Shown in pieces: positions 58,101 through 64,000 of a DNA stretch of 64,000 nucleotides. How positions within the stretch are numbered: position 1 is the first letter of the stretch; each line of letters opens with the position of its first letter. Source of the stretch: Mizuhopecten yessoensis (taxonomy: Eukaryota); the NCBI RefSeq assembly GCF_002113885.1, contig NW_018406620.1:252680-316679 (forward strand), written 5' to 3'. The notes under the pieces were generated by a model that was given only the letters and a program-made list of their open reading frames with translations, ran no database searches and was not told the origin of the DNA. The position numbers were made by a program, and so were the translations under genes.

Positions 58101-61100
58101 CTGAAATACCATGCCGAAGTCAATCCACTATAAAGATGTATTAAAATATAACTATAAAGATGTATTTAGAGATAAGAAACAAGAGCGTCGATGTCGAAAA
58201 TGAACATCTTATATATCTACAATTGTTATCGAAAATGAAACATATGTTTCTTTACGTGTGATGTAATACTGTATAAATGCGATTCTTTTTGTTAATGTAA
58301 ACGCGAAATTTCTTGCGTGTGGAAATCTTCGTTTCGTGACAGTGTGAAATTTTGGGGTTGGCAAAAGATCAGAAATATGTTCTATACTTACAATTGATAT
58401 TATCGATACAACCAATTCCATGTAGTCGGTCGTCATGTTTTATTCTGTCTATACTTAACTATTTTACATCTTTTAATAATTCTATTAAGTATTTACATAT
58501 ATTTGCGCCGTAATTTAGTAAACGCAAAAAAAGCATACCGCGATAACTTTTGACTTTTACAGTAATATCTTTGGGAAAACCAGAGTGCAGATATCCGAGG
58601 TTTAAAAGAACTGTACTTTTGCAGTATACGTTTATCGATCTGAGTGCCAATTGCATTGGTGTTCGTTATAAGCAACACATATAAAGAAAAAAAGATTACA
58701 GAAAAACAACTTTCGTCTTTTGACCTTAGATTCCCCCACATCTCCTTCGTGCAACGCCGGTATGACCATTGACTTTATAATAGTACAAAGAGATTTGTTA
58801 GAAACGTGGGCTAATGACAGAGACGCTACGCAAATGTCAGACGAAACACAATAATCTTCTTAAGTTGATAAGAAAGGGAGGACAGATTTTTTTTGTGACG
58901 TTAGCAAAATGCCTGTTGTTAGGATACAAACGGTTTTGCTAAGTTTCCTAAAGCCTGGTTAGCTTTGTTACAAAATTTTATTATCTAATAGCAGTAGGAT
59001 TTTTTTTTTATTTTTTTTTTGTCTTTTTTTTTTTACAGTATGGTGTATACCTGGCTTCGAAATGATGAACCCATAATGAAAAAGTTATACATCATTTTGA
59101 ATTATGGGTTATGTTTTTTATAGAAATTGGGGGAAAATGAATCAATAGGGTTCAAAATGAAATAGCTGAATTACTTGCTTATCTTGTATAAAAGATTATT
59201 ATGTAAGTTAAATTACAATTAAGGACAGTTAGTTTTGATATGACAAAAAACTGCATTAATTTTGTGTTTCTGAAATGTTTGCTTTCTATCTACTTTGGGA
59301 GATTTATAAACCGCTGACTAGGCTATCGATTTCCCCTGCCCGAGAGAATCTTATTACCGATACTCAAACACAGCCGAACCTACATACACATTTGGACAGT
59401 TTGCTGGGATTACTCAATACGATCCCGTGTTCACCATAAAGTAGACTTGTTTTGAAAGGTTTGTCATTGACATCGGTCTAGAACTAGCAACAGTGTTCGG
59501 AAAATCGATCAACGTAATACACACCTAATTCCACATGGAACATGTTGCCAAGTTAAAAGGTCGTATTTGATGCTATTTTCCCAGTATGCATCCGACCTTA
59601 CATTGATTACCGATACGTTCGGTTGTATGTGTTATATCATCCTCACAACAGGTTCAAAGGTTAAATTAAGACGGAAGTGCCACTGATAGGTCAATTTAAA
59701 GCATCATCCCACTGAAATGTCATGACCTGAACACGATAACATAACACTCGTATTCGGTCACGTTATACTAATAAGGGGCTAACCATTTTTTACCTCCAAC
59801 TTGTTAAAGTATGAAGAGACCAGCTAAAATCAATAAGTCACTCCTTGTTTGTCACAGTTAGGGGACAGAACGTAGGACCCCCCTTGCTGAGATGAAACGA
59901 AAGAAGCTAGTTGATAAAAAGGAAAATAAAACGAACCAAAATGTTGCGATGTCTTTCAGTAGGTAACAAAGTTCTATTTTCCCCACCGTAACGCAAATTG
60001 ACAGAGTACACTGACATTCAATGTGTGTGTCACTTGCCAATCACTTGCAGCAAACTTGCAAAAACAGCAGCAAAATGTTTGTAGTTTACAATTTGGAGAG
60101 AATGGGCAAGTAAATGCTCACCATAATGATCTTATTTGGAAGTATATTTTTTGTGGTCGTCATCGGGATTTCGCGGGAAGTTTTGTATGACTTCTTTTTG
60201 TGATGTGAAGGCTTTTGTTGCACTATTTGGGATTCTTTGTTGTATTGTTGTCACCTACCGGGCTCTTGACGTGAGGGCGTGACATTGCTGGGATTCGCAT
60301 GGCGGGTGTCGTCGATGTTGCGGGGGACGCTTGCCATTCCGGAGCGCCTGGTCTTGTGCTCCGTGTGGGTTTCCGGGTGTTTCCGTGGGATCTTTTCTTC
60401 GTTCATATTTCACCCTGTTTTTTTGTGGAATTCGTGTTTGGGTTGTGGTTTTATTGACACTTCAACATTCTCTTTATTTTGCGCTTAAACTACTCTTGTC
60501 TTTTATTATACTCATTTGTGTGTCTTGTCTTGTTGATTAACATGATGTGTGTCGTCGATGTAGCATAAGACGCTTACCCTTCCGAAATATCTGTACTTAT
60601 ATTCCTTGTACTTTTTAAAGGGTCTCCATGTAAATGATTTCGTGTTCATGTTGCGGTTTTGTACTCTGTGACAATCTTTCGATGTTTTCTTTTTTTCAAA
60701 CTTTCAAAACTGACAAATTTAAATCTGGTAATTGAAACAACAAGTTCTGTTGTAAAAATCATTTCATGATTATTTATTTTTTTATTGTTTAGGATTTTTA
60801 TTCCATAAGTTATTAATAGAATTGCATCTTCGAAAGAAAATGACAAGATGGTGGGAAGGGAGAATGGGGGCTTGGCGTTCATGGTGTTTATAAAATGTAT
60901 TGTTCTATATATGGAAACATCGATTTATATACTCCTGCTCCTCATCAACAGGATTAGGGACACGTTGACACAAAGCTGTCTGATCTAATTGAAGAGACAA
61001 ATTATTGAAGCTTGGGTTGGAGAATGAAACGTTTGATCGAGCGGGCTCCGATTTCCCATCATCGGTCGATGTCAAACCAATTGTTTACGTCATCGAACCA

Positions 61101-64000
61101 CAGGTAAAACTAAAATCGTTTTAATACGTTTTTCAACGGACTTCATTGACATTTGCTTTCATTGCAGGACAAATTATTGAAGAAAGGAATGGTGATTCTA
61201 CGGGAGGGAATGAAGAATGATTTAGGTAAGAAATGTAACGACACCAATCGGTGAAGATTTCCAATTACAAAAGAAGCGTTATCGTGTTTTTACCATACGC
61301 ATGTTGGTAACCTGTAACTGAATACACACACAAGTAATTACAACATGGAATGAGTTACACCTTTAAGAAAATAAAGATAGAAATAACAATTCCTTATTTT
61401 AAAGAAAACCTTTTAATGTAGAAAAAAAATCAGTTTTTAATTTTTGCGTTTTTCGTAGTAACAACCTTTCTGCAAAAATACATCCCACGAATTTAATAGT
61501 TACTGAATCCCCCTTAACAATAGTTTTACATGTCATAATCATTATACTTGATTCCCGGGGGAAATATAACCCTCGAAATTGAGCATTTTAGTAAATCCGT
61601 GCAAATTAAGGACAGACAGAAAGACATTTGTCAGTAATCAATATGTCATGGTTTTACCGTAAATCAAGCCATATTTTCGTTTTCAAAGTAGAACAACTGT
61701 ATGCATAAATGAATTACAGAAATAGCAAATAATCAAAGGTGGATAATCAAAGCTTGATCATCCTTATTTTCAGCTATTCATATTTCATTTAAGGGTTAAA
61801 TAAAATGATAAAATGGAGAGCTGTTTACAGGGTTATCCTGCTTTGTATGAAAAAAGAGACCGCTTCTTGTCGCTGCATATTTGGTTTCATATTAAATTTG
61901 AATTGCTTTCTTTAATGTTGATATATTAGAAATTGGCGAAAAGCCAACGCTAGGCGACAAGGCAAAATGATATTTACTTTCTCTGAACACCAATCTAAAC
62001 TACAAATATTGCCAGTGTACAAGTGAGAACGCTGTAGGAATCGTTCAAATAAAGCCGACCACGCAACATGCACGTGCCATACAAACGACTTCACGTAATG
62101 TTGTACAGGATTGTTCATTGCCTTTTTATGTACATCTTGGACTGATGCTAGTCGGCTACGCAACCTGATTTCCTGTTCTATAATGTTTGGGAATAATGTT
62201 CTTTCGGAACCTGTCAGTTTAGCAATTTTAATATATCGATTCCATTGTTTATGGACTTAAAGATGTCTGGTTAACGTTTATGTTCAGTCCGAACAGCTGT
62301 TTTATTGTTATAACTGAAAGACATACAGGAAACTGTTTGCCTGTGTGTTGTCAACGAGTATGTTACATGCTTGATGGTCATAGAATGTCCTAATTATAAT
62401 CAGGATTGTGATGGGACATCCACCGATACTAGTAAATACGATGCACAAAGTCAAAAGTGTTCTAATGTCAGCGAACTTTAAGACACTGCCAGTTGTGTTT
62501 CTCAATGATAATATTTGTCGATGCATTCTCTTCTTCTCTTTATATTATACTGCTCTGATTATATCTAGTAATTTTTTAAGCAGTGGCGTTTATGTTATAG
62601 TGCAGATATATCAATAGTAGTCAATACTAAGTGCATGTACATGTATTTATTATATTTGACAGCAGCCATTTATTCATTACTCTACTCGTCTTGTCTGAGA
62701 CATTTCTTGATAACGACTTTCGAACGTTCATATCACGTAGTTGAATTAACAGTGATCTTATTCTGTCTTAAACCTACATAATACTAGTACTGCGACATTA
62801 ATTTCTGTTTCAAAATCTCCATTAAAAAATGTTTATTCTTTAATAAAGCTATTTTGTACTAGGTCGATTTCAGATTTATTTTTAACACATATGTAACCAT
62901 ATGGAATATTAGAAAAAAAATATTACTTTCCTGTAAGGGATCTCATTCAAATACTGGGTAGTTGTTTCAAGTAGTAAATAGTCTTAAAGCATAACTGTTG
63001 CAATGCTTTTATACCATTACACATTCTTATTTATTCAATATTCATATGCTGCATACACACGATTTTATAATACTTATACAAATGGCTAAGATGGATAGAT
63101 TTCAGTCAAAATACTCTTAAATCAATACATCATAAAGTTAAAAGTTAAAGATAGTTTCCAATACAGGTGCCGATAGAGCTCCTCTTCACTGGACTCAAAA
63201 ATTAAACAATTGTATAAAATTAAGTTAAAGTTCATTGTTATCTAAATTTACCCTATAATTTTGATAAAACTCTTCATTCTGCCAAAGTCCATCTATTCTG
63301 TTCTTAAAATTATTGATATTTGGAGCGGATACAACGTCCTCCGGAAGGTTGTTCCATACGTCATACGTCATGAATTACTTTATAGCAGGCTCTTTAATTT
63401 CTAGGTTCTGTGTTATTAAAGAAGATGGGCGAACAGTGGTCGTATCTTCATGCCGAGATCCTCCCAACGTTACAAGCTTTGTTTTATCCACTTCCTGTAA
63501 GTAATGTCACTCCAATGCTATCCATCTGATCCTTCTCATTATACATTACTACAGGAGCCTAACAATCAATCGTACATCTGGCAGTCACCTCGTTGCCATG
63601 GCAGTAAATTATACATAGTTTGACACCCTATAAGCGTTCACACACTTGCTAGACAATACTTGATCGTTAATGGGGATATTCAGTGATTGCAATACTTCAT
63701 TTATGTATTTATTTATTGATTATTTCTTTTATCTAATTTTTTTTTTTTTTGATTATTTATCTATTTGTTTATCAAATTGCGTTTTGATGAATCAGTAAAC
63801 TTACATCTAAAGTAATCATCCTATATCACTTTGTCATTTGTCATATAACGGTACGCGATGAACAGTTGTTTTTAACACCTACATCCTCTGACATGGATAT
63901 GGTTTTATTGTTTTTTTATATTACAGACCAATGATTCCTCTATACGAAAAGTGACATTTCTAGAATTCCGAGACGTGGTCGTCCTTAAAGTCGGCATAGA
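43099..64000 (+). CDS. PRR5: Proline-rich protein 5 / Protor-like (mTORC2 component, HbrB-type domain), 3'-partial, multi-exon
   Basis: In-phase exons 43099-43142 (tentative start), 53628-53762, 56402-56482, 57473-57521, 61168-61225, 63405-63496, 63927->64000. The core translation SIQIAVIQLFQRRKLQEGELAVLQETLRNLISSDAGPLIFDYYKDKLLKKGMVILREGMKNDLGSVLLKKMGEQWSYLHAEILPTLQALFYPLPTNDSSIRKVTFLEFRDVVVLKV matches vertebrate PRR5/PRR5L as recalled (KGMVILR, LP.LQA.FYP, S.R....L.FR). Confidence 0.88.
44640..44798 (-). mobile_element. V-domain SINE, diverged copy
   Basis: Reverse complement aligns with the 13568 copy (GGAAACCGGAGTAC..GAAAACCCA; AATCGAACCCC; TATCCATTGCG). Confidence 0.75.
48441..50070. 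repeat. 41-bp minisatellite, about 40 copies
   Basis: Unit GGTTTCTGTGTGATATAACTAACCGGTACAGCCTTATTACT with a palindromic ACCGGT core. Confidence 0.97.
52346..52429. repeat. 28-bp perfect tandem repeat x3
   Basis: ACACAGTATAACGTGTCACAGGCAGGGA. Confidence 0.95.
53628..53762 (+). CDS. PRR5-like N-terminal exon HSLANVAEAWKGVTHGSRRLSMTSQIRMSAGNVLDYASKNETLE
   Basis: tttccaacag/ and AAG/gtaagt; open phase 2-2 and in frame with 56402. Confidence 0.75.
56402..56482 (+). CDS. PRR5: PRR5-like exon SIQIAVIQLFQRRKLQEGELAVLQETLR
   Basis: cttcgcag/ and /gtactt; matches the Protor N-terminal helix. Confidence 0.9.
57473..57521 (+). CDS. PRR5: PRR5-like exon NLISSDAGPLIFDYYK
   Basis: ttttcag/ and /gtaagt; phase 2-0. 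Confidence 0.88.
57905..58122 (-). mobile_element. SINE 3' portion (related tails at ~24510-24570, ~32105-32200, ~37825-37980, ~40900-41020)
   Basis: (TTTGG)n + TTTAACGT..AGCTAAGGTCATTTAAGGA shared with 24512-24570; TGCTATCTCACTGAAAT shared with ~37900. Confidence 0.55.
60145..60480 (+). mobile_element. Penelope-like/RT retroelement 3' fragment, A-to-G hypermutated
   Basis: TTT TGT GGT CGT CAT (FCGRH) resembles the FYGRH C-terminal motif recalled for mollusc Penelope-like RTs; downstream GGGTGTC...GCTT(A/G)CC.TTCCGGAGC.CCTG block; partial second copy at 60541-60610. Confidence 0.55.
61168..61225 (+). CDS. PRR5: PRR5-like exon DKLLKKGMVILREGMKNDL
   Basis: ttgcag/ and /gtaaga; KGMVILR is identical to the PRR5 motif. 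Confidence 0.92.
63134..63359 (-). mobile_element. 5'-truncated CR1-type LINE (ORF2 C-terminus plus 3' UTR)
   Basis: Minus strand reads VWNNLPEDVVSAPNINNFKNRIDGLWQNEEFY (CR1 WN.LP..VV.A....FK.R.D); short repeat tail; possible TSD ATACRTCAT at 63125 and 63363. Confidence 0.85.
63405..63496 (+). CDS. PRR5: PRR5-like exon SVLLKKMGEQWSYLHAEILPTLQALFYPLP
   Basis: ttctag/ and /gtaagt; W..F/L....LP.LQA.FYP motif. Confidence 0.92.
63927..64000 (+). CDS. PRR5: PRR5-like exon (truncated by the window) TNDSSIRKVTFLEFRDVVVLKVGI
   Basis: Polypyrimidine tract plus ttacag/; S.R...L.FRD motif. Confidence 0.88.

Follow-up and report, generated by a model that had tools for sequence, protein, structure and literature searches.

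ADAR-edited retroelements have reportedly been re-integrated in mammalian genomes, as Knisbacher and Levanon are said to have described in 2015 (Ann N Y Acad Sci 1341:115). In the 1990s, A>G-hypermutated retroviral genomes, those of avian leukosis virus/RAV-1 and of spleen necrosis virus, were attributed to ADAR. When ADAR edits long perfect duplexes promiscuously, conversion reaches a ceiling at about 50% of the A's.

APOBEC enzymes have left G>A footprints in LTR retrotransposons, which are described as genomic fossils (Knisbacher & Levanon 2016, PMC4866542; Zaranek et al. 2010, PMC2873906), and depletion of a 5' G has been given as the signature of human and Xenopus ADAR (PMC2873906). Among molluscs, ADAR1 of oyster and abalone hyper-edits herpesvirus RNAs on overlapping sense/antisense transcripts, with T, A or C preferred upstream of the edited base and GA only weakly edited (Rosani et al. 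2019, PMC6651903). As late as 2016, the part that ADAR plays in mutating retrotransposons was still "not yet determined" in the words of a review on their restriction (PMC4982230), and well-polarised genomic cases therefore have some value. Our literature searches yielded no ADAR-edited retroelement fossil from molluscs.

Here we analysed a window (the whole stretch of DNA under study, 64 kb long) that contains one such candidate, termed copy A. The original prediction, made from the letters of the window, had proposed that a hyper-edited sense transcript was reverse-transcribed and inserted, and the polarity of the changes, their strand asymmetry and their neighbour context all support this proposal. 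We put the probability that copy A represents an ADAR-hyperedited sense transcript, reverse-transcribed and then inserted in the germline, at roughly four in five.

Organization of the locus

Two pieces of the same retroelement family lie close together in the window, and the features of the locus are as follows:

60145-60480, forward strand: copy A, the 5'-truncated 3' end of a retroelement (ORF tail and 3'UTR), A>G hypermutated on the sense strand
60149-60208, forward strand: remnant of the ORF tail, compared codon by codon with the family majority
60153-60445, forward strand: the 30-31 A>G sites, which hit both the ORF tail and the 3'UTR and are densest at 60261-60389
60446-60480, forward strand: the 3'-most ~35 nt of copy A, without A>G; the majority-A sites 60457, 60459 and 60467 are still A
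60481-60534, no strand assigned: T-rich spacer from copy A to copy B, to which most family members are not alignable
60535-60660, forward strand: copy B, a shorter, partial member of the family, oriented like copy A and not hypermutated

Copy A is about 335 nt long, consists of the last ~20 codons of the ORF followed by the 3'UTR, and aligns with family copies at 66-76% identity across 60145-60480. Its ORF tail begins with FCGRH (TTT TGT GGT CGT CAT, 60149-60163) where the family has FYGRH and homologous proteins have KFYGRH, bearing out the substitution read from this motif in the original prediction. A premature TGA follows at 60188-60190, and the stop codon of the family aligns to 60206-60208. 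Regardless of any editing, the fragment is 5'-truncated and dead.

Copy B has a deletion of ~36 nt relative to copy A and is 78-84% identical to most family copies; in the spacer, a single family copy, L005, is alignable from 60501. We considered the possibility that copies A and B are sisters from one event and set it aside, as the 6 derived states that they have in common over 152 columns do not clearly exceed chance, and the unedited state of copy B also disfavours it.

An A-poor stretch within copy A had been reported at 60261-60400, and our recount was identical, with 11 A's in 140 nt (C 32, G 53, T 44), eight of them after G, three after C and none after T or A. No other 140-nt stretch of the window combines at most 10% A with at least 30% G, the window median for A being 31%; this A-poor, G-rich signal is far beyond chance.

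An abundant family of 5'-truncated retro-copies

The fragment does belong to a retroelement, as its RT-encoding family, the shared 3' end of the copies and the homologous proteins show. The genome searched comprises 988 Mb in 82,659 contigs (the window itself has a G+C content of 35%), and a first look returned more than 1,000 family candidates. A 27-nt core, written as an IUPAC pattern, has 1,945 matches in the genome (917 forward and 1,028 reverse), and its reversed control has none. When copies are placed on the long copy L029 (reverse-complemented), their starts range from 207 to 614 and their ends fall together at ~760-782, and a shared 3' end with variable starts is typical of retro-copies truncated on their 5' side.

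Upstream of the shared part, the longer copies encode the RT motifs ..GIPMGTNC..LADLFL.. and FRYIDDV (YIDD), together with a conserved C-terminal region ending ..KFYGRHSDLIGKY.. about 20 codons ahead of the stop. The homologous proteins P0001, P0052 and P0074 carry the corresponding KFYGRHS.L.GK. Database homologues number thousands, many with a precomputed PF00078 assignment, and the nearest clusters in a protein atlas are unnamed and come from molluscs, cnidarians and rotifers. Our own RVT_1 matches for the copies and their homologues are weak (E 2.5e-4 to 5e-4; 20-21 bits, below the curated cut-off of 29.6). We found no intact full-length copy of the element in the genome, where all RT matches contain stops, and since every RT-bearing genomic copy carries them, the family is old.

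Classification through an intact copy was dropped, given the stops in all RT matches and the sub-threshold RVT_1 as the only Pfam result. Hallmarks of Penelope-like elements are a GIY-YIG endonuclease, pseudo-LTRs and a hammerhead ribozyme. Because the ORF stops ~20 codons past FYGRH, the element has no C-terminal endonuclease, and Rfam gave no match to a hammerhead ribozyme. We place it tentatively with the non-LTR (target-primed) type, perhaps among the Penelope-like elements.

A>G excess on the sense strand of one copy

To polarise the changes in a given copy, we took as reference the majority base of all other copies in each alignment column, and counted the column if that base reached at least 60%. 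A first set, 49 copies from similarity searches, has 62 majority-A sites in this comparison, and copy A reads G at 31 of them. Against a second set of 60 copies, which were chosen only via the 27-nt core and fetched separately, the figure is 25 of 54; the other 60 copies in this set have a mean A>G of 6.3% (sd 4.4%, maximum 20%), the maximum coming from a copy with only 15 majority-A sites. When all 109 copies are used, half of the majority-A sites (30 of 60) are G in copy A, over a pooled background of 6.4% (binomial p ~3e-20). The majority base at the sites is A at frequencies of 0.74-0.98, indicating that the family consensus does not already carry G there.

The excess is strand-asymmetric and restricted to this one copy. 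A>G in copy A stands at 50% versus 10% for T>C (13/128), 12% for G>A (8/68) and 13% for C>T (8/60), and A>T was counted at 7/60. These other classes range from background level to 2.5 times background, with T>C, A>T and T>G at about twice, and at non-A sites copy A is 22-24% diverged, at the top of the family range (mean ~15%). The raised other classes fit simple old age, and part of the A>G excess could likewise be due to age, or to a source element that differed somewhat.

We also considered whether decay of CpG had distorted the majority call, and rejected this explanation: CpG observed/expected is ~0.9-1.0 in both the window and the family, decay of CpG has no bearing on most of the changed sites, whose 5' base is T or A, and the majority-A frequency is 0.76-0.98 at the sites after C.

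The comparison of 60298-60367 with 60541-60610 on which the original prediction drew was reproduced without gaps, with 22 differences, 11 of them G in copy A and A in copy B and none the reverse; the other 11 comprise four C/T, four G/T, two T/A and one A/C. That prediction had cautioned that some of the G/A differences might be G>A in a decayed neighbour. The caution was right in part. Polarised by the family, eight of the 11 are A>G in copy A, two are G>A in copy B and one is ambiguous, and all four C/T differences are C>T in copy B.

Copy B has G at only 2 of 33 majority-A sites in the first set and 2 of 31 in the second. The affected stretch is broader than first claimed, its changed sites running from 60153 to 60445, all inside copy A, while copy B, 55 nt downstream, is unaffected. 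Confinement of the changes to the element is suggested by copy B and by base composition, the unique flanks being polarisable only with an outgroup genome.

Neighbour context of the changed sites

With neighbours taken as the ancestral (majority) bases in the 109-copy comparison, the converted fraction of A's falls in the order of their 5' base from T (12/15, 80%) and A (6/8, 75%) to C (6/11, 55%) and G (5/18, 28%). Sites after a 5' G are depleted relative to non-G sites (Fisher p 0.004), which is the depletion that the ADAR reading had called for. By 3' base, the fractions are 9/11 for G, 6/9 for A, 7/12 for C and 8/21 for T, and this effect is a trend only (p 0.10-0.16). The remaining 109 copies served as a control: their A>G rate hardly varies with the 5' base (5.5-7.2% over the four contexts), indicating that the context belongs to the event that produced copy A and not to the general mutation process. 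Judged from sequence, the 5' ranking in copy A matches that of mollusc ADAR1 and the human and Xenopus signatures.

These data bear on a change of the DNA after insertion, whether by GC-biased gene conversion, transcription-associated strand asymmetry or a local mutation hotspot. Copy A is old and would have had time to accumulate changes, and the locus is perhaps transcribed, since 60000-60482 is represented by an RNA-library contig. Biased gene conversion, however, acts on both strands alike, and copy A has A>G at 50% versus T>C at 10%. It would have reached copy B as well, which lies on the same strand 55 nt away with its A>G at 2/33, and the A>G background of the family carries no 5' context. 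To our knowledge, no DNA process converts half of the A's of one strand over 300 nt, and we find an origin after insertion scarcely credible.

Errors of the reverse transcriptase could also yield A>G during cDNA synthesis without RNA editing, through an imbalance of the dNTP pool or dislocation mutagenesis, and such errors would likewise be strand-specific, limited to one copy and finished before integration. Dislocation mutagenesis is expected to prefer template A's that G precedes, whereas the observed sites are depleted of 5' G. Furthermore, A>G does not depend on context in the 109 other copies, which the same enzyme made, and the ranking U, A > C > G, the trend towards a 3' G and the level of ~50% are those of ADAR (PMC6651903). 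We therefore give reverse-transcriptase error very little credence.

Direction of change

The inference of ADAR editing requires that A be ancestral, and the opposite polarity was therefore weighed. Copy A would then be a relic of an older G-rich source, and the family master would have undergone G>A changes; cytidine deamination of minus-strand cDNA is one example of a cause. The sites in the UTR are polarised solely by the within-genome majority, that is, by copies that possibly all stem from one master, and copy A is the most diverged of the copies at other sites as well. The outgroup polarises two coding sites only. At these, which lie in conserved codons, the homologous proteins have Tyr (in FYGRH) and Lys (in GK), and copy A has C and S via A>G. 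Distant homologues thus give A as ancestral at both polarisable sites, and it is the family majority, not copy A, that encodes the conserved protein.

If copy A is taken to be ancestral, a weak signal of 3' context emerges (p 0.026), but the 5'-context signal vanishes (p 0.72), while the forward model yields one of ADAR type. In addition, no other relic with the G's was found among the 109 copies or in whole-genome searches: any other copy shares at most 6 of 24 of them, with a unimodal distribution, and the whole-genome search for a close relative of copy A returned none above 76% identity over more than ~100 nt. Short pieces of ~70 nt match copy A at up to 82% identity, and contig C82386 carries the copy A sequence itself at 99.4% identity and looks like the other haplotype. 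Together, our data indicate that A>G in copy A is the direction of change, and a reversed polarity is improbable.

Presence in DNA and search for further copies

Assemblies of three DNA runs, each from a different study, contain contigs that span copy A and depart from it at no more than one base, placing it in the DNA of several individuals, and 18 of the 20 public runs holding the stretch carry at least half of the sampled words. An indel at 60147 and a polymorphism at 60453 are common to the DNA-run contigs and contig C82386, and variants at 60246 and 60267 were seen only in the RNA-library contig. An assembly or sequencing artefact, which would have to be repeated in that second contig and in the assemblies of all three DNA runs, has a negligible probability.

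The original prediction had also suggested screening the genome for other copies with clustered A>G, and here it found no further support, as none turned up among the 109 copies or in two limited pattern screens. The 27-nt core with G at all sites, allowing up to three mismatches, has no match in the genome, and the core with G at three favoured sites has one, copy L097, which is not hyperedited. Both screens demand near-perfect conservation elsewhere in the pattern and sample perhaps a tenth to a fifth of the copies, so the blank is weak evidence against recurrence.

Candidate enzyme, duplex and proposed course of events

The genome has matches to A_deamin (PF02137) above the Pfam cut-off at several loci, one of which, locus C5459, is 52-55% identical to vertebrate double-stranded-RNA-specific editase 1 (ADAR2-type). 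By homology, the genome therefore encodes putative ADAR-type deaminases. ADAR is named here as the probable enzyme from the signature of the changes.

Editing by ADAR calls for a long double-stranded RNA as substrate. An intramolecular hairpin in the 3'UTR was examined as the ADAR substrate and rejected. Folding of six single family 3'UTRs gave z-scores of -5.7 to +0.8, not consistently better than shuffles, and Rfam holds no family matching the 3'UTR, with only chance-level miRNA-like matches at one locus. No dsRNA partner was identifiable. Given ~2,000 copies in both orientations, duplexes between sense and antisense transcripts or from inverted pairs are plausible.

We propose the following course of events. 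The sense RNA of an abundant RT-encoding element, derived from another locus, would have paired over at least ~290 bp into a long duplex, most likely with an antisense or inverted copy from the same family. ADAR would then have turned about half of the adenosines into inosine, preferring those with a 5' U or A and a 3' G and avoiding those with a 5' G. Editing would have preceded integration, in which the RT of the element may have taken inosine for G while copying the RNA, from its 3' end, into the germline genome, giving a 5'-truncated, non-functional insertion. This insertion would have aged like the other copies and would now be common or fixed in the species.

The original prediction went on to call the fragment a fossil of anti-transposon activity; a defensive meaning of this kind would be a functional reading placed upon the event. 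A further suggestion is that ADAR editing coupled to retrotransposition recurs measurably in bivalve germlines, with copy A as the visible tip, and that the edit-free ~35 nt at its end are the part of the 3'UTR recognised by the RT. We regard this as doubtful; if it were true, edited insertions would let genomes reveal ancient ADAR specificity and anti-transposon pressure.

Comparison with known systems

Copy A would be an invertebrate case of an RNA-level modification that became heritable as DNA sequence. The case is a clean one, in that ~110 sister copies serve as internal controls and both the half-saturated conversion and the neighbour preference are preserved, and it illustrates that a single event can make a GC- and CpG-rich island of novel sequence within an AT-rich genome. 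Its weight is limited by its being one dead copy of 335 nt and by the mechanism being accepted in principle already.

Like the edited retroelements of mammals, copy A displays sense-strand clusters of A>G relative to its family, which are explained by an RNA that was first edited and then reverse-transcribed and integrated. In contrast to the mammalian cases, it belongs to an invertebrate and to another, unclassified RT element, is a single copy, and is changed at ~50% of sites over ~300 nt, which is unusually heavy. With the A>G-hypermutated retroviruses it shares the route by which inosine in the template, read as G by the RT, gives clustered A>G in DNA. Those viruses were exogenous and studied in cell culture, whereas copy A is a germline-fixed fragment of a non-viral retrotransposon.

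The APOBEC fossils resemble copy A in how they are detected, namely through unidirectional, strand-biased clusters of mismatches polarised by the family. They differ in enzyme, in substrate (cDNA as opposed to RNA), in mismatch and in context, and G>A in copy A is at background (8/68). In neighbour preference, copy A resembles the ADAR1 editing in oyster and abalone, where an upstream T, A or C is likewise preferred and GA is weak; in that case the signature was found in RNA only, whereas in copy A it is written in the DNA of the host.

The A>G-free end of copy A and the base-change background

The hypermutated retroelement copy, copy A, carries no A>G change in its final ~35 nt (window 60446-60480), where the family majority has A at three sites, one of them preceded by a 5' T. 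Either the duplex stopped short of this end, or the end had to remain intact for reverse transcription. Across the 109 other family copies, sense-strand A>G amounted to 6.4% versus 4.6% for T>C, an excess of ~1.4 times that was independent of the 5' neighbour. The CpG observed/expected ratio was ~0.92 for the whole window and ~1.0 for the family copies, indicating that the region has no methylation-type CpG depletion.

Probable alternative haplotype and possible transcription at the locus

A small contig of the same assembly, G000:C82386, is a near-copy of window 58600-62220 (99.45% identity), from which it differs by 18 substitutions and 2 indels, and is probably a separately assembled alternative haplotype. 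Among its variants, the indel at 60147 and the variant at 60453 were also found in DNA contigs from other individuals, and those at 60246 and 60267 were found elsewhere only in an RNA-library contig. Window 60000-60482, comprising the upstream flank and copy A, was spanned by a metatranscriptomic RNA-library contig from the public sequencing run X19, which has the alternative-haplotype alleles and may reflect either transcription or DNA carry-over.

Clustering and 3'-end variation of family copies

Copy A and the shorter partial copy B lie in the same orientation, 55 nt apart. Family copies tend to be clustered, with 2-3 fragments per locus in 8 of the ~50 fetched 3-kb loci, which may result from insertion into or beside pre-existing copies, or from template switching. 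The multi-fragment loci, in which some fragments form short tandem duplications, are:

L054, L004, L003, L023, L028, L048, L040 and L005

Moreover, the alignment of a subset of copies ended ~75 nt short of the common 3' end, and ~36 nt were missing from copy B in the corresponding 3' region (60635-60640). Together, these alignments suggest a second 3'-end variant or subfamily within the family. The early-ending copies are:

L009, L015, L022, L024 and L030; end at reference position 700 on the long copy L029 (about window 60388)

Downstream of copies A and B, two short AG/GT-bounded stretches that look like putative small exons were spotted by eye:

window ~61000-61230, + strand; ..caggtaaaa.. 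and ..ttgcagGAC..TTAGgtaaga..

ADAR-type genes in the genome

Exon matches to A_deamin (PF02137) are numerous in the genome, at the following loci:

G000:C76735:71800-180700
C696
C1154/C81141
C5518
C5459

On contig C76735, four or five apparent A_deamin paralogues are arranged in tandem, and, judged from these domain matches, they may represent an expansion of ADAR/ADAD-like genes.
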